Of a stretch of 64,000 nucleotides of DNA, positions 3,167 through 61,499 are shown piece by piece; within the stretch, counting starts at the first letter, position 1; every line of letters begins with the position of its first letter. The DNA lies in the sequence record LR756502.1; one strand, given 5' to 3'. The translations under genes were made by a program, and so were the position numbers. Below the pieces are notes generated by a model. That model was not told the DNA's origin. It did not search any database and saw only the letters and a program-made list of their open reading frames with translations.

Positions 3167-3653
3167 TTTACAAAAAGGTCAATCTATATACGAACAATTA
3201 CAGGAACAAGTAAAAGATATAGATACTTCGAATCTATCAGATGATGTGTCGAGTGAGGTGATATCTACTGTTACCGAAGAGCAAAAGATATATTTTTGGA
3301 CAAGGTTGTATCTAAGAGACGAAAATCCAAATATTGAAATTGGTGATGATATTATAATGTCATACACACCATCTGGTGAGGAATTAAAGGCTAAATTTGT
3401 TTGCTTTGAAAAGAAAGGCCTTGGTAGGGAACAAACAGATGATGTAACATCTTATAATACAGAGGATGATAAAAAGGCTTTGTGTCTTATGATTGATTCT
3501 AAGGATGTTAATTACTCTGATCAAATACCATTTATTAGAACACTATTTAAGACAGGATTTCATTATGACTATCAATTGGTTAAAAGAGATGAGCTTATTT
3601 TTGTTCTTGAGAAGTCTGGTATAATGTTGGATTATTATGATGTAGACTTCTAA
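3156..3653 (+). CDS. Hypothetical protein
   Basis: 165-aa ORF ending the operon, convergent with next gene. Confidence 0.75.
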   Translation: MSSSLQKGQSIYEQLQEQVKDIDTSNLSDDVSSEVISTVTEEQKIYFWTRLYLRDENPNIEIGDDIIMSYTPSGEELKAKFVCFEKKGLGREQTDDVTSYNTEDDKKALCLMIDSKDVNYSDQIPFIRTLFKTGFHYDYQLVKRDELIFVLEKSGIMLDYYDVDF

Positions 3654-5161
3654 TTACATTCATAGCAGTCTACCATACCATGATCACATCTATCACAATC
3701 AAAATATCCAGATCCTTCACACTCTGAGCAATCTACTTTACCGGTACCATCACACTCTCGGCAATTTATTGGTTCTCCATCATCATCTGGCTCTTTACCA
3801 CTACCATCACAATCCGGGCAATCTACCTTACCCTCGTCACAATCACAACCAACTCTTCCATTGTCACACTCTTCACATGGGAAAGATCCACTACCACCAC
3901 AACAATCACAGGTGCCATTTCCACCATTTGTGTCTTCTAGATAGAAATCATATCCAACTGTAGATGAATTTGATATTGTTCCATTATGTGAGTAGTATTT
4001 CATTGTGTCCATATATGGGTAGTAATCAAAATTGTTCTTATCTAGTTTGACAATTATCTTGCCTTCAATTGCCTCTCCGTTGAGTAATATTGTTGTGCTT
4101 TCTGAATTTTCTTGTTTCTCTTTGTACAACCATCCATTAATAATTGCGTATTGCTTAAATAGTTCAACATCGGACTCTTTTGTGAAGTATACTCTATCCA
4201 TGAATGTTCTTCCCTTTATATCTTTCCATAGTATTGCTCTTCCTCTTATCTTTGTTTCTTCCACAACAATTTTTGTTTCCCCTGTATTTTCGTCTATTAC
4301 CTCAATACTACCTGGTTCATTCTTAAGAATTATCATTGATACTTGTTCTGGATTTTCTACATATATTGAGAAGAATTTTTGACATTTTGGATATTTCATA
4401 CAAGATCCGTTAAGTGTTCCTCCTGCTTCTGATACATATCTATCTTCGTGATACCATCTTCTAATATCTTCGCCCTTTACTATTTCAAATAATCTAAAAA
4501 CATCTTTCTCAATTTCAATTCTGGATCTAAACTGATTAACAAATTCTTCTATTTCCTTGTCAGAAACTTTTATACCTGATTTATCTAATATTCTTTTTGT
4601 GAATCTGCCTATTTTTATCTCACTCTTTGGTAGATTTGCAATATCTGATTTTAAACCATTGCTATTTATTAGTACTTCATATTCTTCTCCATCTTCTATA
4701 AACTTAAAAACCATCACAAAAAGTCCGTCCTCATATCTTTTATTCCAATATCCTTCCGCTTTGTATAAATCCTCTATTTCATTTAATGATATTTTTCTAG
4801 CTGATCCGGATTGTCCACTATTTGGAACCTTTGACTTCTTAATTCCTAGTTTCCCTTCTTGTATAGCTTTCCTTGATAGACCATCATATATATGGTCACC
4901 CAAACTACCAATATATGTATATTTTATTTCTTTAGCTCTATTGTCTGGTGTGAATGCGACCGTATCATCTTTATCGGTTAGGTCTATATAGTTTGTATTA
5001 ACATCAACCTCTTTACCTACTAAGTCACTCAATTGTTTAGCTATTGGTGATTTGATCTTAGAAAGTATACTAACGAACCTATCAGAGAAGTTAATATTGG
5101 CTTCTAGGATAATAGATATATTACTTTCTGATATGAAGTCTATATAGTTATTAATTTTCAT
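3650..5161 (-). CDS. SCM-motif domain protein with C-terminal DnaJ-type CxxCxGxG zinc-finger repeats; CTS-like N-terminus
   Basis: MKINNYIDFISE; GTLNGSCMKY, GRAILW, FMDRVY, YYPYMDT; CDCCGGSG, CPDCDGSG, CRECDGTG, CSECEGSG. Confidence 0.75.
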   Translation of the reverse strand: MKINNYIDFISESNISIILEANINFSDRFVSILSKIKSPIAKQLSDLVGKEVDVNTNYIDLTDKDDTVAFTPDNRAKEIKYTYIGSLGDHIYDGLSRKAIQEGKLGIKKSKVPNSGQSGSARKISLNEIEDLYKAEGYWNKRYEDGLFVMVFKFIEDGEEYEVLINSNGLKSDIANLPKSEIKIGRFTKRILDKSGIKVSDKEIEEFVNQFRSRIEIEKDVFRLFEIVKGEDIRRWYHEDRYVSEAGGTLNGSCMKYPKCQKFFSIYVENPEQVSMIILKNEPGSIEVIDENTGETKIVVEETKIRGRAILWKDIKGRTFMDRVYFTKESDVELFKQYAIINGWLYKEKQENSESTTILLNGEAIEGKIIVKLDKNNFDYYPYMDTMKYYSHNGTISNSSTVGYDFYLEDTNGGNGTCDCCGGSGSFPCEECDNGRVGCDCDEGKVDCPDCDGSGKEPDDDGEPINCRECDGTGKVDCSECEGSGYFDCDRCDHGMVDCYECN

Positions 5162-5166
5162 TATTG

Positions 5167-5175
5167 TATATATTA
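5167..5175 (-). promoter_or_regulatory. Putative late promoter TAATATATA
   Basis: 5 nt before ATG 5161. Confidence 0.7.
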
Positions 5176-5199
5176 TTATATTTTTATAATAATGAATAA

Positions 5200-5249: not shown

Positions 5250-5723
5250 TTATTTAAATCTCACACTTTCTACTTTTGAACTAGGTGTGATTGGTTTTCT
5301 TTCAGTTTTAATAGCTGATTGATGTATTCCAGATGATGCTCCAGCTTTAAGTTTTTCAAATCCTGTTCTTGTATCATATGCTAGTTTTTCAAATATCTCA
5401 TTTTTAAGAGTTGTTCTTACCGCTGTATAATCAGCATCTATCTTAGATATGCCTAATAGACCAAGTAGTTCTTTTTGACAAAATATATCTAACTTAGCCA
5501 TAAGTGACTTTTGAATACCATCTAATGATTTTTGAGTCTCTGGATTTTTTTGATCTAAAGCAGATTCAGCAGCTTTCAATTTTGCAAATTCGTCTTTATT
5601 ATCATTTTTGAATTTATCTTTTGCTTTTCCAATCTTTCCTTTAAGGAACTCAAAAGCCTCGTCTACATTTTGTCTGTCAAGATTTTCGGTAGAGAATCCT
5701 TCAAAAGTTTTTAAGTGTTTCAT
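5250..5723 (-). CDS. Putative virion internal protein (CTS-like N-terminus)
   Basis: MKHLKTFEGFSTE; TAATATATA at 5749-5757. Confidence 0.7.
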   Translation of the reverse strand: MKHLKTFEGFSTENLDRQNVDEAFEFLKGKIGKAKDKFKNDNKDEFAKLKAAESALDQKNPETQKSLDGIQKSLMAKLDIFCQKELLGLLGISKIDADYTAVRTTLKNEIFEKLAYDTRTGFEKLKAGASSGIHQSAIKTERKPITPSSKVESVRFK

Positions 5724-5748: not shown

Positions 5749-5757
5749 TATATATTA
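5749..5757 (-). promoter_or_regulatory. Putative late promoter TAATATATA
   Basis: Upstream of 5723. Confidence 0.7.
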
Positions 5758-5852: not shown

Positions 5853-7391
5853 TTGTTAGTCGATACACAATATTTAACAAATAGTAAGCGATTGGTTGTA
5901 AGCTATGTTGATAAGACTGGTGATATAAAGCTCAAGTATTATGAGTGGGAAAATCCCATGAAATATATTACATGTGAGGACAATGATAAAGAAAAACACC
6001 CACAGTTTAGATCTTGGGATGGAAAATCTGTTAAACAAATTGAAGTAAATCATCCAGATAGATATGCTATTTATGAGTTTCTTGATTCTCTGCCTGAATC
6101 AGAAAGAGAAGAAATATTCGAATTTAATCTACCAAAAACATATTTTATTGATATAGAAACAGAGATAGTTGATGGGTTTCCAGAGGCTGCTGATGTTAAA
6201 GATGCTTTGGGTAATGTTATAAAAGAGGGAGCTTGTACAAAAGTTTTATCTGTATCAATTGTATATGATGATAAGATTATATTACTTGGATTAAAAGACA
6301 TGCCTGACGATATGCAGGAAAGAATACGTGTAAATACAAATAAATATTTTGAAAAATATAAATCGGATTATAAATTCAAGTACATAAAGTATGAGGATGA
6401 GTTTGATATGTTGTATGCTTTCTTCTACAAGATGGTCCCTAAAATGCCATTGATAACTGGGTGGAACTTCCTTAACTATGACTGGTTATATCTTGTTAAT
6501 CGTTCTAGAAAGATAAGTAAGTTTGTAAATGGTAGAGAATATAAAATAGATCCTGCAGTTTCTTCTTTAACAAAAAGACTTAATAAGATATGGTCTACTG
6601 AATTTGAAGTACCTGCTCATAGAATGATATTTGATTACATGCAGTTATATGAAGTGTGTGATACATCCATTAAGGTTAAGGAATCATCATCACTTGACTT
6701 CGTTTCTAGTAAGCTTGTTGGTGTTGAGAAGATTAAGTACACTGGATCATTACAGAAATTATATGAGGATGACTTTGAAACATTTATGTACTATAACGCG
6801 GTCGATTCGGTCTTAGTTCAAAAGATACATGAGTCCAGAAATTATATATCAATTATATATGCGATATCCGCCTTGGCTAAAATAAGAATTGTTGATGTTG
6901 TTTCTCAGATGAATAATGCTCTTGGATCACTCGCAATAACTGAGGGAGTTCTTCGAAATAGATTTAGGGAAATGGATAATATAGTTCTATTTAAGGGTGA
7001 AAAGTCTGATGGTGAAGCTACAATTGCTGGTGGTTGGGTTAAAGACCCGATTGTTGGTATGAATCAATGGTGTGTTACTTATGACTTTGCCTCACTTTAC
7101 CCAACCACACAAAGGCAATTTTTTATTGCTCCAGAAACATTTATTGGTGTTCGTGATGTTAAAAATCCTGAGTATTGTGATAACGGAAGAAAGATAGAAT
7201 TGGATAAGCATGTTATTTGTGTTAATGGTGTTGTCTTTGAAAAGAGACTATCTCCAACTTTAAGAATGCTTGAGGATGTCTATGCTGATAGAAAGAGGAA
7301 TAAAAATATTATGATGGATAAGAAGGATGAGCTTAAGAAGATAGAGGATGAAATTAAATCTATGGAACTTGAGCTAAATGGTTCTATTTAA
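5853..7391 (+). CDS. Family B DNA polymerase, N-terminal subunit (3'-5' exonuclease plus motif A) of a split enzyme
   Basis: TTG start; ExoI FIDIETE, ExoII GWNFLNYD, ExoIII YNAVD, motif A YDFASLYP; stops in the fingers before KxxxNSxYG and YGDTDS. Confidence 0.88.
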   Translation: MLVDTQYLTNSKRLVVSYVDKTGDIKLKYYEWENPMKYITCEDNDKEKHPQFRSWDGKSVKQIEVNHPDRYAIYEFLDSLPESEREEIFEFNLPKTYFIDIETEIVDGFPEAADVKDALGNVIKEGACTKVLSVSIVYDDKIILLGLKDMPDDMQERIRVNTNKYFEKYKSDYKFKYIKYEDEFDMLYAFFYKMVPKMPLITGWNFLNYDWLYLVNRSRKISKFVNGREYKIDPAVSSLTKRLNKIWSTEFEVPAHRMIFDYMQLYEVCDTSIKVKESSSLDFVSSKLVGVEKIKYTGSLQKLYEDDFETFMYYNAVDSVLVQKIHESRNYISIIYAISALAKIRIVDVVSQMNNALGSLAITEGVLRNRFREMDNIVLFKGEKSDGEATIAGGWVKDPIVGMNQWCVTYDFASLYPTTQRQFFIAPETFIGVRDVKNPEYCDNGRKIELDKHVICVNGVVFEKRLSPTLRMLEDVYADRKRNKNIMMDKKDELKKIEDEIKSMELELNGSI

Positions 7392-8037
7392 CTTTTGTCA
7401 CTGTAAACTCTATATCTGGTAATTCTTTTTTAACAATTCTCTCAACTCTATTTACAACCTTTGAGTTATCATCAAAAAAGTGTGCCTTTTTGAATCCAGT
7501 CTCTCTTATTAAATCTACAATTTTGTAACCTTTCCAAAGCCCTGGATTGCCAGATCCTTTACCGGCTGGAAACATATGTAGTCCATATTTTGGCTTTTCT
7601 AACCCAAGAGACTCCATAGTTTCCCCTACTTTCTCTCTCATATCTTCTGGTCTAGCCGTTACAATACATTTATCTTCAACATCATTATACATTTTTGATA
7701 GATCCTTTACTTTTTTTGGTAGACTTATATCAGTGAATGGAAATCTATGTGGTGTTAGTAGATATACCCTTTTATTTTTCCTTTTCCAATTTCCAATTAT
7801 ATTTAGTTTAAATTCTGGATCTTCAACATAAAGCCTGCCATTCTCCCACTTAATATCCGATAGCTTGGATCCTATCCTATCCACTGATATTTGTAGCATG
7901 TCTTTTATAGTTATGTTTTCTTTAAGAAACTCAATTGATAATTCCTCAAATGTTGGTGTCTTAACAAGTGTTTCATCAAAATCAAATATGTATAAGATAT
8001 CTGACTTAAAGCTTTCAAATTTTTTAATCCTCATCAT
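7384..8037 (-). CDS. HAD-superfamily phosphatase, CTS-like N-terminus
   Basis: MMRIKKFESF; YIFDFDETL, VTAR, HFFDD; start placed at the MMR codons rather than 8049. Confidence 0.75.
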   Translation of the reverse strand: MMRIKKFESFKSDILYIFDFDETLVKTPTFEELSIEFLKENITIKDMLQISVDRIGSKLSDIKWENGRLYVEDPEFKLNIIGNWKRKNKRVYLLTPHRFPFTDISLPKKVKDLSKMYNDVEDKCIVTARPEDMREKVGETMESLGLEKPKYGLHMFPAGKGSGNPGLWKGYKIVDLIRETGFKKAHFFDDNSKVVNRVERIVKKELPDIEFTVTKVK

Positions 8038-8209
8038 TGAATAATTCATTTATAATATTTGTATATCCGACTCCAAATCTTTCTATGCACATACTATATA
8101 TTTCATCCTTATCCTCAATTCCTTCGATAATAATCGATTCTATGTATTTCTCAACGTCGCTACTGTCAGAATATATTCCAAAATCATCATAATCTATTAT
8201 AATATTCAT
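8024..8209 (-). CDS. Small acidic hypothetical protein
   Basis: TAATATATA at 8230-8238; overlaps downstream gene start. Confidence 0.65.
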   Translation of the reverse strand: MNIIIDYDDFGIYSDSSDVEKYIESIIIEGIEDKDEIYSMCIERFGVGYTNIINELFNDED

Positions 8210-8229: not shown

Positions 8230-8238
8230 TATATATTA
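8230..8238 (-). promoter_or_regulatory. Putative late promoter TAATATATA
   Basis: Upstream of 8209. Confidence 0.65.
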
Positions 8239-9968: not shown

Positions 9969-10004
9969 AAAAACCCACCAAATGGTGGGTTTTTTTATGC
10001 CTTT
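9959..10004. terminator. Bidirectional intrinsic terminator
   Basis: Perfect 22-bp inverted repeat AAAGGCATAAAAAAACCCACCA-AA-TGGTGGGTTTTTTTATGCCTTT between convergent genes. Confidence 0.9.
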
Positions 10005-10416
10005 ACTTTTGTTTCTTTAATATTGCTTTTTGCATTGCTTCTGGAAGTTTCTTTTGACCAGCCGTTAAACCTTTTTTAGGTTCTTTCTTTTCAGCTTTTT
10101 TATCGTCCTTTTTATCTTCTTTCTTACCTTTTTTCTCGAAGTTAAATTTTTTCTTTTCAACCACTTCATCTCCCCATGTCTTTCTTCTAACCGGTTTATT
10201 CTCTTCTTCCTCTTCTTCCTCCTCTGGCTTGCAAGCTGGACAACCATCAGTTCCACAAGGACACTCTTCTTCCTTGAATTCATTATCTAGTCCGTCATTC
10301 TCTTCTCCTTTTACGTGGTTTAACCAATCTTGCTCATCTGAGTCAGTTTTAGTAAATCTCCCAGCATCTTCTGAGTCGGAAAAATTTTCAAATGTTTTTA
10401 GGTATCTTAATTTCAT
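10003..10416 (-). CDS. Acidic/basic low-complexity protein, CTS-like N-terminus
   Basis: MKLRYLKTFENFSD; E-rich middle, K-rich end GLTAGQKKLPEAMQKAILKKQK. Confidence 0.75.
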   Translation of the reverse strand: MKLRYLKTFENFSDSEDAGRFTKTDSDEQDWLNHVKGEENDGLDNEFKEEECPCGTDGCPACKPEEEEEEEENKPVRRKTWGDEVVEKKKFNFEKKGKKEDKKDDKKAEKKEPKKGLTAGQKKLPEAMQKAILKKQK

Positions 10417-10440: not shown

Positions 10441-10449
10441 TATATATTA
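10441..10449 (-). promoter_or_regulatory. Putative late promoter TAATATATA
   Basis: Upstream of 10416. Confidence 0.7.
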
Positions 10450-10517: not shown

Positions 10518-10526
10518 TAATATATA
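10518..10526 (+). promoter_or_regulatory. Putative late promoter TAATATATA
   Basis: 4 nt before ATG 10531. Confidence 0.7.
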
Positions 10527-10530: not shown

Positions 10531-11313
10531 ATGAAAATACAGAGGTATAACGAACACTCATTATATTTATCAATGAGTGAGTATTTTATCGAATCATTGC
10601 AGTCTATTATTACTGAGTCTGAGAGCACTTCAAAGTATAAGGATATAGAGAAGAAAGTTATAAAGGATCTAAAGCTAAACCTTTCTATAGTTGGTACATT
10701 TGGTGCTGGTATATCTGTTATGTATCCAATTGTTGAGAAACTGGTTAGTAATATGGAGATCAATATTGATATCACCCCATCCAAGATTGTGTTATTGACA
10801 TTGGCCGCATTTTCAATTATTTACCTGGAAGAGAAAAAATCAAAGTTAGATTCCGACAAAGAGGCTGTTTTAAGAAAAGATTGTCAATCTATGTTAGAGG
10901 AGCTAAAAATGTCTGGAATTGGAAATGGTATTGTTAAGAAATTAATTGATGGATTTAAATCTATAAAGAATATATTTTCTCTAATAGGAAAGCATGCTGG
11001 TGCTATTGTTGGTGGATTTATTGATATGTTTGCATATGCATCCTTAGCAATGCCGATATTAAATGGTGTATTGGTGATTGTTGGTAAGTATGATTTGACA
11101 TTGGATAGTTTACCTGGTAATTTTCTTGGGTTAGCAACTGGTGTTGGTACAATAATTGCTAAACATGGAATAAGTGATATATTAAATAGAATGAAAGGAA
11201 AACTTCCATTCAATAAGAATAAAGTCATTGACGAAATCGATACTCCGATTATACAGAAGTTTGGTGACGCCGATATTGAACAAGACGGAAATTTAATCAA
11301 GGAAGAGCAGTAA
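10531..11313 (+). CDS. Hypothetical protein with hydrophobic segments, CTS-like N-terminus
   Basis: MKIQRYNE; TAATATATA 4 nt before ATG. Confidence 0.75.
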   Translation: MKIQRYNEHSLYLSMSEYFIESLQSIITESESTSKYKDIEKKVIKDLKLNLSIVGTFGAGISVMYPIVEKLVSNMEINIDITPSKIVLLTLAAFSIIYLEEKKSKLDSDKEAVLRKDCQSMLEELKMSGIGNGIVKKLIDGFKSIKNIFSLIGKHAGAIVGGFIDMFAYASLAMPILNGVLVIVGKYDLTLDSLPGNFLGLATGVGTIIAKHGISDILNRMKGKLPFNKNKVIDEIDTPIIQKFGDADIEQDGNLIKEEQ

Positions 11314-12779: not shown

Positions 12780-13748
12780 ATGAGTAAAAAAAATGTCAAA
12801 GATGACGAAGATTTTGATGATGAAACAGAACAAACTACCGATGAGTCGGTTGATGATTATCAAGAAGATGATGAAGAAGTAGAAGTGGAAGAGTCAACTT
12901 CAGAAATAAGCAAGATAAGTGATGATGATGATATGGAACTTGTAATTGAGATAGATGAAGGTGATTTGGATATAACTGACCCAAGTAATGAGGTAGTTGT
13001 TAAGACTGAAGATACTGAATCCGAATCTGAAGAGATAGTATTATCAAAACATAAGATACAAGGAAAGCATACTTTAAAGTATGATTCTATTTTCAAGGGT
13101 AAAAAAGATGAACCATTGGATGAGGAAGATCCAGATGCGGCTTCTATGTACTATAAGGAAAGCATTGAAGTTGATAAATCATCTAACTACTACTTTGAGT
13201 CTATTGACAATGAGCACTATATTAGAGCTAAATTAGTTAAAGAAAGAGTTTATGCTATCCTTAGTGAAAATACAAACCTTAACTTCCTAAACAATAGGAG
13301 AAAGCCATCAAGGGTTGATTTTAATAACTATTATATGTTGTTGAGGACCAATCTACAGGAGGAAAGTTTTACAAATGTTGAGTTGTTCAATGAGCTATCA
13401 GTATATTTTTCCGATAATCTATTTAATATGTTCAAGTTATTGGAAAATAAGTGGAGAAATATGATAATATCTGAGCTCCAAGAACATATTGGTAAATCAA
13501 AAACAGATAAAGAAATTAAAAACAGAAATATCTATATTGGTACAGAGATAGAATTTACATGGATGGATGGTGAAGAGGAATTATCTATAACTGGTGTCGT
13601 TGTTGATGCTGATTATCAATTATCAACATTCAAAGTGGATTCATATGAAAACCTCTATGATGTAGATATATTAAATGTCACAAAGATATTAAACAATTCA
13701 AAATTTAAATATAATTTAAATAAGCTTAACAATATTGACTTCTTATAA
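12780..13748 (+). CDS. Hypothetical protein with strongly acidic N-terminal half
   Basis: 322 aa; D/E-rich first ~90 aa. Confidence 0.8.
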   Translation: MSKKNVKDDEDFDDETEQTTDESVDDYQEDDEEVEVEESTSEISKISDDDDMELVIEIDEGDLDITDPSNEVVVKTEDTESESEEIVLSKHKIQGKHTLKYDSIFKGKKDEPLDEEDPDAASMYYKESIEVDKSSNYYFESIDNEHYIRAKLVKERVYAILSENTNLNFLNNRRKPSRVDFNNYYMLLRTNLQEESFTNVELFNELSVYFSDNLFNMFKLLENKWRNMIISELQEHIGKSKTDKEIKNRNIYIGTEIEFTWMDGEEELSITGVVVDADYQLSTFKVDSYENLYDVDILNVTKILNNSKFKYNLNKLNNIDFL

Positions 13749-49421: not shown

Positions 49422-49422
49422 A

Positions 49423-50388: not shown

Positions 50389-50391
50389 ATT

Positions 50392-50400
50392 TAATATATA
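50392..50400 (+). promoter_or_regulatory. Putative late promoter TAATATATA
   Basis: Directly after a terminator, upstream of 50420. Confidence 0.7.
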
Positions 50401-50419
50401 ATTAAAAATAATTATTTTT

Positions 50420-52297: not shown

Positions 52298-53632
52298 ATG
52301 TTAGACTTTTTGTTCAGAAATAAGAAAAATAAAAATAAACAGGAGATTGTTAATAAAATTAATAATACTACTATGGACGACGCGAGCGAGTTTGTTTTAA
52401 AAACATTTCTTAAACTAACATCCAATACTTATCCATATGGATTTGAGGAGTATTTGGTTGATGAAATGATGAAATTAAAAATGTTCCCATCTGATATTCA
52501 AAAGGATGCCTATGGAAACTATTTTTATAAAATTGGTAATTCAAGAACGATGTTTACATCACATCTTGATACTTCTTGTAGAGATTATAAGCCAGTAAAA
52601 CACATATTCCAAAAACATCTTATTAAGACTAATGGAACTACTATCTTGGGTGCTGACGATAAAGCTGGTATGACTATTATGCTTTATATGATGAAGAATA
52701 AAATACCTGGTCTTTATTACTTTTTTATTGGTGAGGAGGTTGGTTGTGTTGGATCTGGATTGGCTGCTAAGCATTTAGCGTTCAAGGCTGACTATGATAG
52801 ATGTGTTTCTTTCGATAGAAGAGGAACCGACTCTGTTATTACTCACCAATCATCATCAAGATGTTGTTCTGATGAATTTGGTAAGCAATTAGCAACTGAG
52901 TTAAATAAGACCGGATTTACATATAAAATAGATGATAGTGGAGTCTATACAGACTCTGCTGAATTTACAAGTGAGATTGCTGAGTGTACTAATATATCAG
53001 TTGGTTACTATAAAGAACATACAACAGAAGAGTCACAAGATATTGAACACTTATCTGAGTTGGCTAAGGCTTGTTTATTGGTTGATTGGGAGTCATTGGT
53101 GACTAAGAGAGATCCATCTAAGACAGAGTATAAATCTTGGGACTATTCAACATCATATTCATCATACGCATCTACATATAGAAAGAGCACTTATCGTGGT
53201 GGTTCTGGTGGAGGTAATTGGAGAGATAGAGACCATGGTTATGGATGGGGTTCTAACTTCAGAAACATAGATAAGGCTTATGGATATGATGATGATTTCT
53301 ATGAGGATGATGAAACAAAGAAAACTCGTAGAGGTAAGAATAAAAAGGATAAAAAGGATAAAAAGGGAACTATCTATTATGATAATGGTAATGGTGAGTT
53401 AATTCCTTTCAATGATAAATTATCAAGAGAGGCATCTGAGTTAGAATTCTTCAATGAGTGTTCTTCTTCATCTGGATCCGATAAATTTGACTGGATAAAG
53501 TTCAAGTTTTTAGATGATAATTTAACAATGGATGAATTGGAAGTTATAAAAAATCAATACCTAGATATGCATGATGAAGAAGAGCGTAGATTCTATGGTA
53601 TTATGAAATCTTATGTTACTCAATTGCGATAG
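52298..53632 (+). CDS. M28/M42-like zinc peptidase with low-complexity C-terminal extension
   Basis: SHLDT, LGADDKAG, IGEEVG, SFDRRG, YTDSAEF, TNISVGY..EH. Confidence 0.85.
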   Translation: MLDFLFRNKKNKNKQEIVNKINNTTMDDASEFVLKTFLKLTSNTYPYGFEEYLVDEMMKLKMFPSDIQKDAYGNYFYKIGNSRTMFTSHLDTSCRDYKPVKHIFQKHLIKTNGTTILGADDKAGMTIMLYMMKNKIPGLYYFFIGEEVGCVGSGLAAKHLAFKADYDRCVSFDRRGTDSVITHQSSSRCCSDEFGKQLATELNKTGFTYKIDDSGVYTDSAEFTSEIAECTNISVGYYKEHTTEESQDIEHLSELAKACLLVDWESLVTKRDPSKTEYKSWDYSTSYSSYASTYRKSTYRGGSGGGNWRDRDHGYGWGSNFRNIDKAYGYDDDFYEDDETKKTRRGKNKKDKKDKKGTIYYDNGNGELIPFNDKLSREASELEFFNECSSSSGSDKFDWIKFKFLDDNLTMDELEVIKNQYLDMHDEEERRFYGIMKSYVTQLR

Positions 53633-53832
53633 TGATCAATAATATCTGATGATTTTATTTTTTCATCAGGAGCATTTGATAATTTAGATTGTGGTATATT
53701 ATGTGTTACTTTATAATACCCACCATTCTTCTCAAGAATTTTAACAGGAGTGATAATATCATTATACCAATATTCTATAAGAATAACATCATCAACATTA
53801 TAAAAAGATTTATATTCAAGTAAAAACTTCAT
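53620..53832 (-). CDS. Small hypothetical protein, CTS-like N-terminus
   Basis: MKFLLEYKSF; TAATATATA 4 nt upstream. Confidence 0.7.
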   Translation of the reverse strand: MKFLLEYKSFYNVDDVILIEYWYNDIITPVKILEKNGGYYKVTHNIPQSKLSNAPDEKIKSSDIIDHYRN

Positions 53833-53836: not shown

Positions 53837-53845
53837 TATATATTA
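53837..53845 (-). promoter_or_regulatory. Putative late promoter TAATATATA
   Basis: 4 nt before ATG 53832. Confidence 0.7.
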
Positions 53846-55992: not shown

Positions 55993-58900
55993 ATGTGGAA
56001 TATTAATAAGGATACAAGTAAGTGGAGTATGACAACTGATAGTCTACCAAAAGATACATTTGATGTATTAAAGCAAGAACTATCAAAGCTAAGGTTTTAC
56101 TCAAAGTGTTTGAGTGGGGCTACATTTATTCCTATGAATAATGTTGATGATGTTTATGATATACTTGGTCAATATGAGCCTAAGAATTGGTACGTTAGTT
56201 CTCCATATTCTGTTACGTCTATTCCACCACAGTATGCATCAGCTATAAGCTCAACAAGTTCTACTGAATACTATACTAAATATCTAGGTGAGTATGGATT
56301 GACTTTGAAGAATTTATTTACTCCAACTAAATTAATAAAAGATTCTATCAATAACTATATCTATGTTGATGTTGCTACAATAGTATCACTTGATAATATT
56401 GGTGAAACTGTTATTGGATTAACTATTGATGGTGTTAGATTAAAAGAGGGTCATAGAGTACTTGTTAAGAATCAAAAAACAAATGTCGTTTTGTCAAACG
56501 TTATTGATCCAAGTACTTATTTTCAGTCTAATTATTATGTAGTAGAGGATTTAGGATTGACAATTGAATATGAGTATTACAATGAGGATAATGGAGTTTA
56601 TATATTTAAAAATAATGTATTAGTTAGAGAGTCTGATTTGGATAGTTATGAAACATGTATGAGATATAGTATATCTGTTAAGCTTGGTGTTATAAACAGA
56701 GAAAAACAATATCATCTATCTAGATTGTTAAATGGGTACTTTCCAACAACATCAGATAACAACCCAATTGAATTTTCTGAAAAACACAATTGGATGTTAA
56801 GAAATAGGGTTGATTATAATAATTTATTTGAAATAAACTATTATGATGTGATTAAGAATGGTACACATTCCTATCAATTAGATGGGGTTACATATAGTAT
56901 TCCTGAAAGGACAATATCTGTCGGTGAATTTGGTGTTATATTAAATAACCAAGAGGGATTGTCAAATATTATCCCAAATAAATATAAAGTTAACCTAAGA
57001 GGTATATCACAAACAACTACAGATTACTGGGTGTGTGGTGATGATGGTACTTTGTTGAAATTAAGAAAACATGACTTTGAATTAACAAAGGTTGATGCTG
57101 ATTGCTCTTGTGGTTCACTCAAAAAAGTAATATCTCCTATTAATTCTATATCATTCTTTAATGACTTACGAGGAGCAGCGGTTGGTGACCTAAATGTTAT
57201 ATTGTTAACTGATGATGGTGGTAAGACTTGGGATAGATTGCGTATAGGTGAGTTTGATGCATATACTTATAATAAAGTAATATATTCAACACTTGATACA
57301 TTTTATGTTGGTGGTGATACTGGCGTTTTCATTGAATTTACATTTAGTTCCGGTGAGTGGATAGCTCATAAGAGAAGAGTCGCAAAATATATTGACTCTG
57401 ATGATGAGTATATACTTGTTGAAGATATAAATGATATGTATGAAACATCAATTACGTCATGGGGTCTAAGTTACTCATATAGTACACAGAGTACATCATC
57501 CGACAAAGACTTGCTTATGTTAGTTACAAATAATGGTAATTTGGTAGCATATGATGTTAATGATTTCATTCCTGAGTTTGACTTTTTATATTTAGATTTT
57601 GGTCAGAATTATGGTGATATTAGATCTATAACAAGAAAAGATAACACAAATGATTTCTACTTCTCTTCTGAGAATATTTATTCATTTGATATTAATAATT
57701 TTAACTATATTACTAGCTCTCAGTCTAATATAATATCAAGTACATATTCAGCATCATTGATATCAAGTGTATATATAAATGAAATGTATGATTATAAAGG
57801 AGAGGAATTAATAATATGTGGTAATACATCTTTATTAAAGAGTGCTACTTATAGTATAGTAAGTTTTAATGATATAGATATAACATTTAATGATAAATTA
57901 AGATCAAAGATGTTATTTATGGATTATGATATTGGTGGTAAGTTAAATTTCTTTGATGATTCTCAGAACTATAGAATGCCTGTATCTGTTACATTTAGTG
58001 GGTCATCATTTAGTGCTGGTACATACTCATATCTATCATTTACTGAGTTGGTATATGGTCCTACCTCACCAAGTTTTATAACTGTTACCGAAAGTAACTG
58101 GTTAACTTATTGGAGTGATAGACAGAAAACATTTGAATATTATAGTTTGGCTCCTTTGGATGAAACAACCAAAGTTAAAATGTCAACAACATTCAGCTAT
58201 TATCCATCAGCTACCTCATCTACATCTATGTACTTTACATCATCTGTTGTTGCTACTGGATATACTGATATACAACCACTTGCTCCTCTTATAAGAAATA
58301 AGACTCTTGGTAGATTCTATAATGCTGGTACTGCGTCAATTACTGCTCCGTCTGTATTATATTCGGTATTCCTTTATGACTATTTAATGGTTGTTAAAAC
58401 ATCAAATACAAACCCAACTCAGGTTGGTGATGTTCTTAGATTTGAGTCAGATGTTGTTGATGGTGATTTCATAGTAAATAAAATGGTTAATATATCAACT
58501 GATAATTATTATTATTTATTTACTGAGTTTAATCAAGCAATTATTAATCAAATAAAGGCTAGCTCTTTACCAATGTCAATAACTAACTTAAACAAATATA
58601 AAGATGTTGATGAATTGTATGATAGGTTTAATTTACATCCAATATCAAAGGCATATGAGATGTCATATTCAACATCCTCTAGTATTGTGGAGATATCTCC
58701 TCTATTTAATAACTATACATCCTACTATAACCTAGCAACAAATGTTATATCAACTGGTGATCTATATACAATGTCATATACCGAGGGGTTCTTGGATTTT
58801 GGATATAAACCAACATATAATATTTTATCATATTTAGAGAGACTTAATCCAGATGTGTTTTTTGGTATAAAGGAATATTTGTCCATGCCTATTTATAATG

Positions 58901-61083
58901 CACTTCCACTTGGATCATTAACATCATCAACTATATGGTTTGAATCGAATGGTATGACCTATTCTGGTGGGGCTTTTAGCTTACCGGTTAATAAGATTTA
59001 CTTTGGTACAGATTTAAGTTTAGAATGGGAAAGTATATTTATAAATACGTTTGTTGATATTACTATACATGGAACATCAGACTATCAAACAGATAAGCTA
59101 TTTGTTATGAATAAGTATTATGACTCTTCATATGACGCATATGTTATTGAATTTCATAAGAGACTTAGTTATACTCTTGGTGATTCTGGTATACTTGGTG
59201 GTAGTGGTACGATGGATATAACATCAAGAAGAACATTACAGCAAATAAGCGATGACTTACAAGAGTTAAATAACTTACAAAGAACTAAGGGTGTTAGTAG
59301 AGAAATTCAAACTGGATTCTCATATACAAACTATGAGAATGAATTAAACTTTAAGTTTCCAACAGATTCTTATGCTAAGATATTACTATCAGATGCTAAT
59401 ACTATTAAAGAGTTAAGTGCTTTGATATACATTGACTATAAGAATGAGTTGGCAATGAATATAACAAGACTGGAGATAGAGTATGAAATACCTATATTTA
59501 ATACATTTAACTTTGGTGGTAATCTTTATGTATCTTGTTCACAGAAACATGACCTTATAGATGGTGATGGTGTTGTATTGGAATTTACTGGTGGTACTGG
59601 TTCTTCTCAACAACTAAATCAACAGTACTTTGGTTATCATGTTGTTACTGTTGTTAATAACTATGATTTTGTATTGGATGTTGCTTATGGTGCTATACCA
59701 ACTGTTGGTAATGATATTGGTATTGTTAAACATATTAAAAAGGATCCATTCTTAAACTACTCTCCTGTTGATATTATTGATATTGGTGTTGATAAGAAGG
59801 GTAAGAGGTCAATAATATTGGGACCTGAAAATGTACAACTTACTGGATCGACATATAAGTTAGTTGATGTTGATTATACGAAGTATAGATTCAGATTAAT
59901 TGATGGTATGAACATTGATATATTAAATTCTAAATATCCTTGGATACTTGAGGCGGAGATAGAAGATGCTATAATTGGTATGGATTCGTCTCAGTCGTTA
60001 ATATGGTATACTGGTATTTGGGAGTGTGGTCGTTGGTTTGGTGGAACTTGGAAGTCAGGAACTTGGAAGTCAGGTGATTGGTATGGTGGTGTTTGGGAGT
60101 CCAAATCAATAACTGATAAACTTTTGACGGTTGCGGTTGATAATGTTACTACCAATAACTCATATTCGAATTGGTTTGATGGTCGTTGGTTTGGTGGTAC
60201 TTGGTCGGGTGGTAACTGGTTCAATGGTAGATGGTATGGTGGTGATTGGAAGACAGGTAACTGGTATAATGGAATTTGGAATGACGGTAACTGGAGAGAT
60301 GGTAGTTTTGTTGGTGGTATATGGGTACTTGGTCAATGGGATAATGGAATTTTTAATACTGATAATAGACCATCTTATTGGTTAGATGGTAAGTGGTATG
60401 GTGGTGACTTTGAAAATGGTATGTGGTATAATGGTATTTTTGATCAGAAAAATGGTAAGAAGTCCAGGTTTGGCACAAATGCATATAATAGTAGAACAGC
60501 TACTTGGCATGGTGGTAAGTGGGTAACTGGTGAATTCCATTCTAGGTTAAATACAAATGATGATGGATATCCAGATGTTTCTGATACTCATAAGTTTTCT
60601 ATTTGGTATACTGGTATATGGTCATCAGGTAATTGGTATGGTGGGATAGCATATGATATTGACTTTAGATCAGGTACTTGGCATGGTGGTATCCTTGATG
60701 ATATTCAAGTTATTGGAGTTGATACAACTAATAATACATTTACTATGAATGGTATATTTAAGTATAACATTGGTGATGATTTACATATAATTGATAACCA
60801 AATTGGTGGTACATACTCTGTTTATGGTAGTAATACAATACCTGGTAGATATAGTGTATTATATACTGTAGAAGATAGTGTAAATAAGTGGACAACTGTT
60901 TATGTTGCTACTGATCTATCAAGCGCTAGTGCTAGTGCTCCATTAAATACTGATATAAGAGTGGTTAGCAGCTTTAGAGGATCTAATTGGAAGTCTGGTA
61001 TTTGGACAAATGGACTATTTGAAAATGGTCTATGGGAAGGTGGTATTTGGTATAATGGTGTTTTTAATGGAACTTGGTCATAA
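55993..61083 (+). CDS. Giant virion structural protein (1696 aa) with BNR-like propeller repeats and WxxGx repeat C-terminus
   Basis: RVLVKNQ; TDDGGKTW; dozens of W-x-x-G-x units from about 60001. Confidence 0.75.
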   Translation: MWNINKDTSKWSMTTDSLPKDTFDVLKQELSKLRFYSKCLSGATFIPMNNVDDVYDILGQYEPKNWYVSSPYSVTSIPPQYASAISSTSSTEYYTKYLGEYGLTLKNLFTPTKLIKDSINNYIYVDVATIVSLDNIGETVIGLTIDGVRLKEGHRVLVKNQKTNVVLSNVIDPSTYFQSNYYVVEDLGLTIEYEYYNEDNGVYIFKNNVLVRESDLDSYETCMRYSISVKLGVINREKQYHLSRLLNGYFPTTSDNNPIEFSEKHNWMLRNRVDYNNLFEINYYDVIKNGTHSYQLDGVTYSIPERTISVGEFGVILNNQEGLSNIIPNKYKVNLRGISQTTTDYWVCGDDGTLLKLRKHDFELTKVDADCSCGSLKKVISPINSISFFNDLRGAAVGDLNVILLTDDGGKTWDRLRIGEFDAYTYNKVIYSTLDTFYVGGDTGVFIEFTFSSGEWIAHKRRVAKYIDSDDEYILVEDINDMYETSITSWGLSYSYSTQSTSSDKDLLMLVTNNGNLVAYDVNDFIPEFDFLYLDFGQNYGDIRSITRKDNTNDFYFSSENIYSFDINNFNYITSSQSNIISSTYSASLISSVYINEMYDYKGEELIICGNTSLLKSATYSIVSFNDIDITFNDKLRSKMLFMDYDIGGKLNFFDDSQNYRMPVSVTFSGSSFSAGTYSYLSFTELVYGPTSPSFITVTESNWLTYWSDRQKTFEYYSLAPLDETTKVKMSTTFSYYPSATSSTSMYFTSSVVATGYTDIQPLAPLIRNKTLGRFYNAGTASITAPSVLYSVFLYDYLMVVKTSNTNPTQVGDVLRFESDVVDGDFIVNKMVNISTDNYYYLFTEFNQAIINQIKASSLPMSITNLNKYKDVDELYDRFNLHPISKAYEMSYSTSSSIVEISPLFNNYTSYYNLATNVISTGDLYTMSYTEGFLDFGYKPTYNILSYLERLNPDVFFGIKEYLSMPIYNALPLGSLTSSTIWFESNGMTYSGGAFSLPVNKIYFGTDLSLEWESIFINTFVDITIHGTSDYQTDKLFVMNKYYDSSYDAYVIEFHKRLSYTLGDSGILGGSGTMDITSRRTLQQISDDLQELNNLQRTKGVSREIQTGFSYTNYENELNFKFPTDSYAKILLSDANTIKELSALIYIDYKNELAMNITRLEIEYEIPIFNTFNFGGNLYVSCSQKHDLIDGDGVVLEFTGGTGSSQQLNQQYFGYHVVTVVNNYDFVLDVAYGAIPTVGNDIGIVKHIKKDPFLNYSPVDIIDIGVDKKGKRSIILGPENVQLTGSTYKLVDVDYTKYRFRLIDGMNIDILNSKYPWILEAEIEDAIIGMDSSQSLIWYTGIWECGRWFGGTWKSGTWKSGDWYGGVWESKSITDKLLTVAVDNVTTNNSYSNWFDGRWFGGTWSGGNWFNGRWYGGDWKTGNWYNGIWNDGNWRDGSFVGGIWVLGQWDNGIFNTDNRPSYWLDGKWYGGDFENGMWYNGIFDQKNGKKSRFGTNAYNSRTATWHGGKWVTGEFHSRLNTNDDGYPDVSDTHKFSIWYTGIWSSGNWYGGIAYDIDFRSGTWHGGILDDIQVIGVDTTNNTFTMNGIFKYNIGDDLHIIDNQIGGTYSVYGSNTIPGRYSVLYTVEDSVNKWTTVYVATDLSSASASAPLNTDIRVVSSFRGSNWKSGIWTNGLFENGLWEGGIWYNGVFNGTWS

Positions 61084-61099
61084 ATTCGACCTATAATAT

Positions 61100-61108
61100 T
61101 AATATATA
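61100..61108 (+). promoter_or_regulatory. Putative late promoter TAATATATA
   Basis: 4 nt before ATG 61113. Confidence 0.7.
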
Positions 61109-61112
61109 GATA

Positions 61113-61499
61113 ATGATAAAGAGATATTCACAATTTATTAAAGAGGCTGATGAATTTGAGAAAACAGATGCTGTTGAAAATTCAAATCCTAATAAGTATA
61201 CAGAGGTTAGAGAAGAGATTAAGTCTATGATTGAAAAGACTATTGAGAAGTCAGGTGGTGAGTTTAAATCATTCACTGAGTCATTTCTTAAATCACCTGA
61301 GGATGTTAAAATCGAAGGCCTTATAAATGATTCTGATGTTTATGACTTTTACCTTAAATGGAGAAATGATATTGATGAAATTCTTAATGATGTTAAGTTC
61401 TATGATGAGTCACCAAGTGATTTGAGTGTATTTGGTTTATATGAATATCTAATAAAGGGTACTGAGAGATCCTTAGAGGAATTCATAAAGGGTTTATAA
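61113..61499 (+). CDS. Hypothetical protein, CTS-like N-terminus
   Basis: MIKRYSQFIKEA; TAATATATA 4 nt upstream. Confidence 0.78.
   Translation: MIKRYSQFIKEADEFEKTDAVENSNPNKYTEVREEIKSMIEKTIEKSGGEFKSFTESFLKSPEDVKIEGLINDSDVYDFYLKWRNDIDEILNDVKFYDESPSDLSVFGLYEYLIKGTERSLEEFIKGL

Follow-up and report, generated by a model that had tools for sequence, protein, structure and literature searches.

The window analysed here, a stretch of 64,000 nucleotides from LR756502.1, a 642-kb uncultivated phage of the Mahaphage clade, encodes many proteins with similar first residues, and raises the question of whether these form a shared tag, how far it extends over the genome, and whether it resembles the peptide with which phage T4 loads proteins into its head. 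A sequence-only reading of the window had proposed that about 25 proteins carry such a T4-like capsid-targeting peptide, nearly all of them driven by TAATATATA directly or from further down the same operon, and that the phage packages dozens of proteins, including enzymes (methyltransferase, HADs, Nudix, zincins, ART-fold, ankyrin), as a pre-made host-takeover or anti-defence kit.

To determine whether the observation is real, the N-termini were located among the ORFs of the window. All 24 N-termini that survive in that reading are present at real ORF starts, and the observation is confirmed, although it understates the extent of the tag. The genes are listed below with their scores under a refined position matrix (described further on) and the distance to the TAATATATA site upstream, here called the promoter.

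3650-5161, minus strand: tagged gene, 503 aa, starting MKINNYIDFISES; score 12.8; TAATATATA ends 5 nt upstream.
5250-5723, minus strand: tagged gene, 157 aa, MKHLKTFEGFSTE; score 20.2; promoter 25 nt upstream; no Pfam hit.
7384-8037, minus strand: tagged gene, 217 aa, MMRIKKFESF; an alternative start at 8049 would bury the tag by 4 residues; downstream of the TAATATATA site at 8230-8238 through the small ORF 8024-8209; no Pfam hit.
10003-10416, minus strand: tagged gene, 137 aa, MKLRYLKTFENF; score 18.0; promoter 24 nt upstream.
10531-11313, plus strand: tagged gene, 260 aa, MKIQRYNEHS; score 12.2; promoter 4 nt upstream.
16430-17269, minus strand: tagged gene, 279 aa, MKIFNWQLFLEE, with weak methyltransferase likeness; score 11.3; promoter 27 nt upstream; Pfam Methyltransf_12/31/25 hits at E 2e-5 to 1e-4, all below the curated cut-offs.
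17272-17832, minus strand: tagged gene, 186 aa, MGIVKKFKDF; score 13.0; promoter 4 nt upstream.
25475-25786, plus strand: tagged gene, 103 aa, MKKIRKFNES; score 14.4; no exact TAATATATA, but a one-mismatch copy lies upstream.
29457-30005, minus strand: tagged gene, 182 aa, MSSFKKFSD, with a DUF5856 domain at residues 87-178 (PF19174, E 1e-16); score 4.4, just below threshold; promoter 20 nt upstream.
30038-30433, minus strand: tagged gene, 131 aa, MKKFTKLLEE; score 8.9; second gene of the operon headed by the site at 31581-31589.
30433-31575, minus strand: tagged gene, 380 aa, MGIINFKNFQLNE; score 4.4, borderline; promoter 5 nt upstream.
32620-32916, plus strand: tagged gene, 98 aa, MKFIKKFEKFLES; score 16.9; promoter 25 nt upstream; first of a four-gene tagged operon.
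32913-34382, plus strand: tagged gene, 489 aa, MKNFSKFLEE; score 11.3; no Pfam or PHROG hit.
34386-36248, plus strand: tagged gene, 620 aa, MGIFKYNQF, with ankyrin repeats at residues 433-580 (Pfam Ank_2, E 5e-14); score 10.9.
36250-36471, plus strand: tagged gene, 73 aa, MHLRRYNESEE; score 25.2, the highest in the window.
37217-37708, minus strand: tagged gene, 163 aa, MKHIKGYRLFES; score 19.6; promoter 8 nt upstream.
38823-39035, minus strand: tagged gene, 70 aa, MKYRLFEFLRE; score 8.7; follows the UvsX-like gene on the minus strand and has no TAATATATA.
39032-39760, minus strand: possible tagged gene, 242 aa, MIYSFGKFINLLNE; score only 1.5 and no TAATATATA; the weakest member.
41820-42089, minus strand: tagged gene, 89 aa, MKRFSDKINES; score 10.1; third gene of the operon headed by the site at 42776-42784.
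42089-42526, minus strand: tagged gene, 145 aa, MIKKWNQFINES; score 21.7; closest in form to the T-even internal-protein starts examined here.
42523-42771, minus strand: tagged gene, 82 aa, MNHLKKFDE; score 13.6; promoter 4 nt upstream.
46964-47446, plus strand: tagged gene, 160 aa, MIKFSNMINED; score 5.9; promoter 4 nt upstream; no Pfam family at E <= 0.01 apart from a chance-level hit.
53620-53832, minus strand: tagged gene, 70 aa, MKFLLEYKSF; score 10.1; promoter 4 nt upstream.
61113-61499, plus strand: tagged gene, 128 aa, MIKRYSQFIKEA; score 17.6; promoter 4 nt upstream.

The literal pattern first proposed, M-x(1-4)-[KR]-[FYW]-x-x-F-x-x-E, is too narrow: it fits only 2 of 84 N-termini in the window and 18 of 981 genome-wide, against 0 of 3,515 internal Met positions. 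The looser pattern is nevertheless far above chance. In residues 2-15 of the window's proteins, K-x-F occurs 22 times against 3.7 expected (p 8e-11), K-F 19 against 4.6, and F-x-x-F 12 against 2.2. To count the tag over the genome, a position matrix was trained only on the 24 window N-termini and applied to 895 ORFs outside the window, where 93 N-termini scored above the 99th percentile of internal 20-residue blocks (9 expected) and 45 above the 99.9th (0.9 expected); blocks starting at internal Met passed at 1.0%. Two-fold cross-validated refinement gave 149 of 895 outside the window (9 expected), and the self-trained matrix gave 194 of 981. The genome total is thus put at roughly 170-190 of 981 ORFs, or about one protein in six, rather than about 25. 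In the window, 21 of 84 ORFs pass the refined matrix; the genes starting at 30005, 31575 and 39760, all on the minus strand, fall just below it, and one depends on the choice of start (8037 or 8049).

The pattern could in principle be an RNA- or DNA-level signal, for example for translation of leaderless or Shine-Dalgarno-less late mRNAs, or simply AT-rich codon bias at gene starts. The GC content is 31%, no Shine-Dalgarno sequences are seen, many late genes have TAATATATA only 4-9 nt from the ATG, and the enriched residues K, I, F, N and Y have AT-only codons. However, synonymous codons at tag positions are used as in the background (Phe at +3 uses TTT 0.73 against 0.72, and Glu uses GAA 0.65-0.67 against 0.65), and substitutions are conservative at the protein level (F/Y/W, K/R, L/I), indicating that the tag is selected at the amino-acid level. 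In addition, 69 tagged genes sit inside operons without a promoter of their own, untagged late genes with the same 4-9 nt spacing exist (38 of 82), internal Met positions pass at 1%, and the AT-rich relatives PTm1 and Lak-A2 lack the pattern in the 50-kb segments sampled. A nucleic-acid signal is therefore considered very unlikely.

The possibility that the proteins are paralogues sharing an ancestral N-terminal domain was also considered. A few small families exist, for example four paralogues of the 503-residue protein, but without their first 20 residues the 194 tagged proteins fall into 182 BLASTP clusters, of which 168 are singletons. The shared part is only about 12 residues, and recognised domains of unrelated folds begin 40-150 residues in, for example DUF5856 at residue 87, an Rnl1-like domain at 81 and PPK2 at 151. 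Untagged homologues exist elsewhere; those of the DUF5856 protein in small phages cover only residues 57-182, so that the tag plus linker is an add-on. The tag is thus portable, and shared ancestry of the proteins is the least likely of the explanations considered.

The association with TAATATATA holds. The window has 25 copies against about 9 expected under a third-order Markov model, and the genome has 211 copies, of which 166 are oriented within 60 nt upstream of a start. Of the 24 genes listed, 14 have the site directly upstream and 21 lie in an operon headed by it. The late-promoter-like sites serving these genes are as follows.

5167-5175, minus strand: TAATATATA site for 3650-5161.
5749-5757, minus strand: TAATATATA site for 5250-5723.
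8230-8238, minus strand: TAATATATA site heading ORF 8024-8209 and the tagged gene 7384-8037.
10441-10449, minus strand: TAATATATA site for 10003-10416.
10518-10526, plus strand: TAATATATA site for 10531-11313.
17297-17305, minus strand: TAATATATA site for 16430-17269.
17837-17845, minus strand: TAATATATA site for 17272-17832.
30026-30034, minus strand: TAATATATA site for 29457-30005.
31581-31589, minus strand: TAATATATA site heading 30433-31575 and 30038-30433.
32586-32594, plus strand: TAATATATA site heading the four-gene tagged operon 32620-36471.
37717-37725, minus strand: TAATATATA site for 37217-37708.
42776-42784, minus strand: TAATATATA site heading the three-gene tagged operon 41820-42771.
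46951-46959, plus strand: TAATATATA site for 46964-47446.
53837-53845, minus strand: TAATATATA site for 53620-53832.
61100-61108, plus strand: TAATATATA site for 61113-61499.

Genome-wide, 152 of 194 tagged genes (78%) lie in TAATATATA-headed operons against 166 of 787 others (odds ratio 13.5, p 5e-50), while 42 tagged genes lie outside recognisable TAATATATA operons. It had been set beforehand that an equal frequency of the motif on non-late genes would count against the proposal; 48% of genes in TAATATATA operons are tagged, against 6% of the rest. Exact TAATATATA precedes the portal, neck and gp25-like baseplate genes, and its 8-base core AATATATA precedes the protease, capsid and terminase genes. 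Neither precedes the gp32, td, nrdA, uvsW, clamp-loader or pseT homologues, and the site is absent from 7 of 8 replication-gene homologues tested, the RNase H homologue lying in a TAATATATA-headed operon. Late timing of the tagged genes is inferred from this promoter sharing only.

To determine whether the tag is objectively T4-like, the window-trained matrix was applied to the T-even coliphage mogra (MN850579.1). All five annotated internal head proteins (Ip7, Ip9, a putative IP, IpIII and IpII) scored 8.2-18.9 against a threshold of 5.66, whereas gp21, gp22, gp23, gp24, gp67, gp68 and Alt fell below it. In an ORF scan of 130 kb of that phage, 5 of 186 ORFs passed, and 4 of these are internal-protein genes or an unannotated neighbour with the same start. 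In T4, the 10-20-residue capsid-targeting sequence (CTS) puts internal proteins and foreign proteins into the prohead core and is removed by gp21 (PMC3012670, PMC5694885).

As in the internal proteins IPI, IPII, IPIII and their variable relatives in T4 and other T-even phages, the tag lies at the extreme N-terminus, is about 10 residues long, is carried by otherwise unrelated proteins, and has a basic then aromatic start, a Phe three residues on, and a hydrophobic-x-Glu end followed by a small residue. The motif [LIVFMYW]-x-E lies within 20 residues in 87% of tagged proteins, against 35% of untagged proteins and internal blocks. The Glu peaks at residues 9 and 11, P3 is I (50), F (41), Y (36) or L (31), and P1' is Ser in 57 of 168; that this is a prohead-protease site is read from sequence alone. 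Unlike the T-even sequences, most copies carry three extra residues before the basic pair, with the aromatic residue at position 7 in 138 of 194 cases and at positions 3-10 in all, and P3 is often Phe or Tyr as well as Ile or Leu. The systems also differ in scale, with 5-8 genes in a T-even phage against roughly 170-190 here, in a cargo that here would include large proteins (up to about 800 residues) and enzymes, and in host, here a predicted Bacteroidota member; the role of the T-even tag rests on experiment, that of the present one on sequence.

The ejection and inner-body proteins of the giant phages phiKZ and SPN3US offer a second comparison. Their large heads hold tens of packaged protein species, some of them enzymes, with N-terminal propeptides removed after Glu by an S80 prohead protease related to T4 gp21 (PMC5694885, PMC13282480). 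Those propeptides, however, are mostly more than 100 residues long and are not a shared short tag, and their cleavage motif has a small residue at P3 (A/S-x-E in the paper's examples), whereas here the tag is about 12 residues, shared, and bulky and hydrophobic at P3. About 50 head proteins are known there, against a predicted 170 or more here. By analogy only, the cargo-loading peptides of bacterial microcompartments and encapsulins are also short amphipathic helices plus a flexible linker, fused to unrelated enzymes and sufficient to address them to a protein shell, but they belong to a non-viral shell with no protease removal, their sequence is unrelated, and no shell genes of that kind were looked for or seen here.

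The genome was then searched for head assembly genes of the T4 type, which were found 20 kb upstream of the window. These comprise a gp20-type portal (PF07230, E 1e-57), a gp23-type capsid protein (PF07068, E 4e-28, starting at residue 88) and a gp21-like prohead protease at 225272-227371 of the record. The N-terminal extension of the capsid protein aligns with T-even gp23, with an invariant Trp, Glu and I-x-E-N. The protease matches phrog_207 'head maturation protease' (6e-28), the 'scaffolding protein and protease' of Tenacibaculum phage PTm1 (2e-22) and T-even gp21 by phmmer (0.0056), and carries the catalytic residues as invariant His72 and Ser127/128 in a three-way alignment that includes T-even gp21, although its Pfam match to Peptidase_S77 (PF03420) is below the curated cut-off (20.2 bits against 27). 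Lak-A2 and PTm1 have the same kind of head genes but no tag in the 50-kb segments sampled, so the head machinery does not require such cargo.

Taken together, the favoured explanation, held with moderate confidence, is that the shared N-terminus is a T4-type capsid-targeting propeptide that has spread to roughly 170-190 otherwise unrelated late genes of this phage. In this view TAATATATA promoters would drive the head genes and the tagged genes together late in infection. The first 9-12 residues would form a short amphipathic helix, with a basic pair, an aromatic residue at about position 7, a Phe three residues on and then a hydrophobic-x-Glu, that docks the protein on the scaffolding core of the prohead, by analogy with T4; the core would probably be built by the C-terminal two-thirds of the 699-residue protease-scaffold protein encoded next to the portal and capsid genes. 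The gp21-family protease would cut after the Glu, most often before Ser, releasing the tag, and the mature proteins would stay in the head with the DNA and enter the next host cell with it, where they could act before any phage gene is expressed. The analysis itself establishes the tag and its statistics, its likeness to T-even internal-protein starts, its portability, the promoter link and the T4-type head genes; late co-expression, docking, packaging, cleavage and injection are inferred, and no proteome of this uncultivated phage was found in the literature searched. Some observations sit less easily with this view. The number of tagged proteins is 25-40 times that of T-even phages, and at one copy each they already amount to about 38,000 residues, although whether a head can hold useful copy numbers of so many species is only a scaling argument. 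Tagged proteins are on average acidic (median pI 5.1 against 6.0), which is not the obvious choice for proteins packed among DNA, and depletion of internal hydrophobic-x-Glu sites in their bodies is weak (observed/expected 0.97 against 1.11).

It is possible, though unlikely, that the tag takes proteins into the prohead where most serve as scaffolding or core filler, to be degraded or expelled at maturation like T4 gp22, gp67 and gp68 rather than delivered as working cargo. A very large head needs a very large core, T4 core proteins are cut to fragments that leave the head (PMC5694885), and most tagged proteins have no recognisable enzyme domain. Tagged ORFs also flank the portal gene, where T4 has its core genes, and in the cultivated Chryseobacterium phage MA9V-2 a tag-like 82-residue ORF sits between the portal and the prohead protease. 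On the other hand, 182 unrelated clusters, including enzymes (Rnl1-like, CCA-adding/poly(A)-polymerase head, PPK2) and ankyrin, are an odd way to make filler, internal hydrophobic-x-Glu sites are not enriched in tagged bodies as they should be if the proteins were meant to be shredded, and the T-even core proteins gp22, gp67 and gp68 do not carry this tag.

Similarly doubtful is a role for the tag as a late-phase address or pro-sequence for something other than the head, such as docking on the membrane or an assembly site, entry into another phage-made compartment, or a handle for a chaperone or protease that times protein activity. A short amphipathic helix followed by an acidic stretch (net charge of residues 13-40 is -2.1 against -0.24) is the general form of many cargo or localisation peptides, the number of tagged proteins is very high for head cargo, and the case for the head rests on no physical measurement. 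Against this, the matrix singles out the T-even internal head proteins, whose tag has a demonstrated head-targeting role, the phage carries the matching T4-type protease, portal and capsid genes, and the Glu site sits at the T4 distance from the N-terminus. The tag is charged and amphipathic and lacks the hydrophobic core of 10 or more residues of a secretion signal or membrane anchor, and hydrophobic segments occur in 4% of tagged proteins against 12% of others.

The interpretation offered by the sequence-only reading is partly supported. Every part of it that sequence can test came out in its favour, while physical packaging, cleavage and injection are inference only. No evidence was found for 'ART-fold' or 'zincin' cargo; the two Nudix genes (47449-47922 and 50420-50992) are themselves below the tag threshold; the tagged 'HAD' at 46964-47446 has no Pfam hit above chance level; and the methyltransferase call is weak. 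Only ankyrin (34386-36248) is a firm domain call among tagged genes of the window, and 'host-takeover or anti-defence kit' is a guess about function.

Capsid-targeting sequences are known from T-even phages, but no paper reporting the tag expansion described here was found. The tag is dense in the 634-, 636-, 735- and 462-kb relatives and in many IMG/VR contigs, and the tag-like ORF of the cultivated phage MA9V-2 also speaks for its conservation. A wider reading, somewhat less likely than not, is that a whole clade of very large, AT-rich environmental phages, including the 462-735-kb Mahaphages and many IMG/VR contigs, loads well over a hundred different proteins per genome into the head through one short T4-type tag, among them tRNA-repair-type enzymes, a polyphosphate kinase, and ankyrin-repeat and methyltransferase-like proteins. 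The virion would then deliver a working 'starter proteome' rather than a handful of internal proteins, and part of the growth of these genomes would be growth of that cargo. Orthologues and paralogues 27-54% identical in the body keep the tag. In the AF2 model of the 503-residue protein at 3650-5161 the tag (residues 1-20) has pLDDT below 50, and no PDB fold match was found for this protein; its family has 786 metagenomic homologues, and 102-107 of the best 120 keep the tag.

The 64-kb window corresponds to bases 248001-312000 of LR756502.1, an unannotated 642,428-bp 'uncultured phage' genome. It is one of the four largest genomes of Al-Shayeb et al. 2020, who place these in the Mahaphage clade and predict Bacteroidetes hosts (PMC7162821). 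The GC content is about 31%, there are no N runs, and no Shine-Dalgarno sequences precede the starts. The window has no tRNA genes.

To determine whether the shared N-terminal pattern proposed in the sequence-only reading was genuine, the 24 N-termini that remain in that finding were compared with the open reading frames, and all were found at the starts of real ORFs. The observation therefore held, although the literal pattern proposed there is too strict: it fits 2 of 84 window N-termini and 18 of 981 genome-wide, against 0 of 3,515 internal Met positions. The looser pattern is not chance. Within residues 2-15 of the window's proteins, K-x-F occurs 22 times against 3.7 expected from the rest of the same proteins (p 8e-11), K-F 19 times against 4.6, and F-x-x-F 12 times against 2.2. 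Unsupervised EM motif discovery on the window's N-termini gave only a diffuse model, with a log-likelihood of 195 that was moderately above the controls (124-171), and was replaced by an anchored matrix with hold-out tests.

For the hold-out test the rest of the record was analysed piece by piece, giving 981 ORFs in all. A position matrix anchored on the aromatic residue, and trained only on the 24 window N-termini, was applied to the 895 ORFs outside the window. It returned 93 hits above the 99th percentile of internal 20-residue blocks (9 expected) and 45 above the 99.9th (0.9 expected), while blocks starting at internal Met passed at 1.0%. A refined matrix, cross-validated by genome halves, gave 149 of 895 (9 expected), and the same matrix trained on everything gave 194 of 981, a figure slightly inflated by self-training. 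The true number was therefore put at roughly 170-190, about one ORF in six; in the window, 21 of 84 pass.

Residue shares by column among the 194 tagged proteins, relative to the anchor aromatic residue:
Position -4: H 40%, Y 26%
Position -3: L 52%, I 42%
Position -2: K 58%, R 11%
Position -1: K 39%, T 14%, R 13%
Anchor: Y 56%, F 36%, W 4%; at residue 7 in 138 cases
Position +1: N 30%, K 23%, E 18%
Position +3: F 59%

A hydrophobic-x-Glu triplet ends within the first 20 residues in 87% of tagged proteins, against 35% of untagged proteins and of internal blocks. The Glu peaks sharply at residues 9 and 11, P3 is I/F/Y/L, P2 is often N or F, and the next residue is Ser in 57 of 168. An acidic stretch usually follows, the net charge of residues 13-40 being -2.1 against -0.24. 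The AF2 model of one tagged protein, the 503-residue product of window 3650-5161 (-), has a pLDDT of 79.6. The tag is predicted as a short helix (residues 6-13) lying in a low-confidence N-terminal segment (pLDDT below 50 for residues 1-20), ahead of a confident body. The model matched no PDB fold at E <= 0.001, and in BFVD it matched only uncharacterised phage proteins. This protein belongs to a family of at least 786 metagenomic proteins with C-terminal CxxCxGxG repeats, and a further conserved L-x-L-L-L-E stretch right after the tag could be a second cleavage-type site.

To investigate whether the signal acts at the protein or the nucleotide level, synonymous codon shares at the tag positions were compared with the background and were found to match it: Phe at +3 uses TTT 0.73 against 0.72, Glu uses GAA 0.65-0.67 against 0.65, and Lys, His and Leu use both or all codons. 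Substitutions are conservative for the protein, tagged genes occur inside operons far from any promoter, untagged putative late genes have the same short promoter-to-ATG spacing, and AT-rich relatives without the tag exist. An RNA- or DNA-level explanation and plain AT bias were therefore rejected.

Paralogy was examined by removing the first 20 residues, after which the 194 proteins form 182 BLASTP clusters, 168 of them singletons. Recognisable domains of unrelated kinds begin well after the tag, including DUF5856, ankyrin, a weak methyltransferase likeness, T4 Rnl1-like RNA ligase, the poly(A)-polymerase/CCA-adding head domain, PPK2 and DUF4314. DUF5856 homologues in small phages lack the first ~56 residues, and one tagged protein aligns from its residue 18 onward with an untagged 669-residue protein of the 735-kb relative. 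The tag is a portable add-on. Pfam and PHROG searches of 44 tagged proteins (the 24 of the window and 20 elsewhere in the genome) were mostly empty, and no support was found for the ART-fold or zincin cargo proposed in the sequence-only reading. Tagged enzymes outside the window (record 491256-492961, 597869-599053 and 140679-141845) include a T4 Rnl1-like RNA ligase preceded by a second tagged ORF, a CCA-adding/poly(A)-polymerase-head protein, and a PPK2 polyphosphate kinase; the first two are tRNA-repair-type activities.

Likeness to T4 was tested with an annotated T-even record. A tblastn search with the window's UvsX-like protein listed T-even phages, of which Escherichia phage mogra (MN850579.1) was used. 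The matrix trained only on the window scores its five annotated internal head proteins at 8.2-18.9, against a threshold of 5.66, whereas its gp21, gp22, gp23, gp24, gp67, gp68 and Alt are below threshold. In an ORF scan of 130 kb of that phage, 5 of 186 ORFs pass, and four are internal-protein genes or an unannotated neighbour with the same start. A 76-residue mogra ORF annotated 'DNA helicase' next to uvsW (positions 10941-11171 of L015, mogra sequence) passes the matrix (score 8.8), although it is not annotated as an internal protein. The megaphage tag and the T-even capsid-targeting sequence (CTS) are thus the same kind of sequence, most megaphage copies carrying three extra residues near the N-terminus. 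In T4, the 10-20-residue CTS brings internal proteins, and foreign proteins fused to it, into the prohead core and is removed by gp21; about 1,000 internal-protein molecules are packed per head, and T-even internal proteins are a diverse set that shares only the CTS (PMC3012670, PMC5694885).

The matching head genes are present about 20 kb upstream of the window, in T4 order.

Head genes of LR756502.1, in record coordinates:
222545-224260, portal: PF07230, E 1e-57
225272-227371, protease fused to a long C-terminal part, 699 residues: phrog_207 'head maturation protease', 6e-28; similarity to the PTm1 'prohead core scaffolding protein and protease', 2e-22; PF03420, E 4.6e-4, below the curated cut-off
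227452-229167, capsid protein: PF07068 Gp23, E 4e-28, domain from residue 88

A T4-type terminase, sheath, gp25, gp4 and neck protein are also present. Aligned with the PTm1 protease and T-even gp21, the protease keeps an invariant His in a G-E-x-x-H-P context and an invariant S-S-R, which are the places of the catalytic His and Ser of this family. The capsid protein's N-terminal extension aligns with that of T-even gp23 and shares an invariant I-x-E-N, the same triplet type as in the tags. Two paralogues of PHROG 4191 ('peptidase'), neither with a Pfam match, lie at window 52298-53632 (+) and at record 229975-231351 (positions 33975-35351 of L005, a piece of the record); one lies shortly after the capsid gene and an NFACT-R_1 domain gene (record 229253-229942).

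TAATATATA occurs 211 times in the genome, 166 of them oriented within 60 nt upstream of a start, and usually has a T before it and no -35-like partner. The exact word precedes the portal, neck and gp25-like genes, and its 8-base core precedes the protease, capsid and terminase genes; neither precedes the gp32, td, nrdA, uvsW, clamp-loader or pseT homologues. It therefore behaves as a late promoter, though only by this association. A search for a second, early promoter word gave nothing sharp. The word lies within 60 nt of 83 of 194 tagged genes, against 82 of 787 others (odds ratio 6.4, p 5e-23), and 152 of 194 tagged genes lie in an operon headed by it, against 166 of 787 others (odds ratio 13.5, p 5e-50). 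Conversely, 48% of genes in such operons are tagged against 6% of the rest, which answers the refuting condition set in the sequence-only reading, that the motif be equally common at N-termini of non-late genes. None of the hallmark structural or replication proteins is tagged, whereas the Rnl1-like ligase is. The distance from TAATATATA to the ATG is bimodal, at 4-9 nt and 18-28 nt, and the short class implies leaderless or nearly leaderless late mRNAs in a genome without Shine-Dalgarno sequences.

To determine how widely the tag is distributed, segments of about 50 kb around the capsid gene were examined. Those of the 634-, 636-, 735- and 462-kb relatives hold 5-10 tagged ORFs per 45-58 ORFs, while those of Lak-A2 and the cultivated Tenacibaculum phage PTm1 hold 0-1. 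A comparison of orthologous tags by synteny between the window and the 634-kb relative found only one colinear block in the parts of that genome examined: a PrkA (AAA plus Ser-kinase C-terminal domain) gene and a DUF444/YeaH-like gene side by side at window 25831-29142 (+), 84% and 75% identical at protein level to the pair in that relative. Usable ortholog pairs came instead from the head-module region, and orthologues and paralogues with 27-54% body identity keep the tag. Of the best 120 metagenomic homologues of the 503-residue protein, 102-107 keep it, many of them on contigs of 300-710 kb. One exact tag variant, searched as degenerate DNA in IMG/VR, occurs 80 times in 74 loci; 75 of the 80 copies open an ORF of at least 50 codons, and 31% of the 921 ORFs in those loci are tagged. 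Among cultivated relatives with the same capsid gene, PTm1 has the tag in 0 of 61 ORFs, and Flavobacterium phage MaF61 has one weak hit and none that is convincing. The cultivated Chryseobacterium phage MA9V-2, a Bacteroidota phage, has two ORFs with T-even-like tags inside its head module, MA9V2_205 and MA9V2_208 (positions 12897-13703 and 16687-16935 of L100, MA9V-2 sequence), one of them between the portal and the prohead protease, where T4 has its core genes. No virion proteome of these phages was found in the literature searched.

The interpretation given in the sequence-only reading, that the phage packages dozens of such proteins and injects them, was partly supported. The best-supported mechanism is T4-type loading, in which tagged late proteins would dock on the prohead core, the protease would remove the tag after the Glu, and the mature proteins would remain in the head and enter the next cell. 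The analysis establishes the tag and its statistics, its likeness to T-even internal-protein starts, its portability, the promoter link and the T4-type head genes, whereas docking, cleavage, retention and delivery are inferred. Weighing against this mechanism, or unresolved, are the sheer number of tagged proteins, their acidic average pI, the sub-threshold Pfam score of the protease, the only weak depletion of internal cleavage-type sites in tagged bodies, and the absence of the tag in the sampled segments of Lak-A2 and PTm1. A rough scaling argument suggests that the number is not absurd: T4 carries about 1,000 internal-protein molecules with 169 kb of DNA, and a head for 642 kb could hold a proportionally larger mass, while one copy of each tagged protein totals about 38,000 residues.

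The CTS and the idea of injected internal proteins are textbook T4, and long propeptides on ejection proteins are known in phiKZ and SPN3US. In the literature searched, no paper that mentions capsid targeting also mentions huge phages, megaphages, jumbo phages or Mahaphage, and a 2026 review of jumbo phages does not mention anything like this. What appears new is the expansion of the same tag about 30-fold and its spread over a clade of giant environmental phages. If the reading is right, the proteins of an uncultivated giant phage that travel inside the particle can be listed from sequence alone, which is normally impossible without a culture, and a function class would be given to a sixth of an otherwise blank proteome. 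It bears on the open question of what huge phages do with their extra genes, a large share of which would be pre-made tools delivered with the DNA, probably for takeover or counter-defence. It would also show that the T4 capsid-targeting system is old and widespread, shared by coliphages and Bacteroidota phages, and can be scaled up about 30-fold. The tag is a simple and specific search key, so the idea can be checked against any virus-fraction metaproteome.

Further features of the window:
20213-24726 (+), three adjacent ORFs of 482-527 residues that all start with Met-Pro, two with TAATATATA directly upstream and none with a Pfam or PHROG match; they may be structural proteins
55993-61083 (+), a 1,696-residue ORF with no Pfam match at E <= 0.001, headed by a small ORF that has TAATATATA upstream
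42821-50992 (+), a run of small enzyme genes on one strand, comprising a calcineurin-like phosphoesterase (43211-43840), two Nudix genes (47449-47922, 50420-50992) and an ATP-dependent ligase-like gene (49472-50113)

In this last run only 46964-47446 clearly carries the tag, and 48612-48863 passes only marginally (score 5.9, probably chance).
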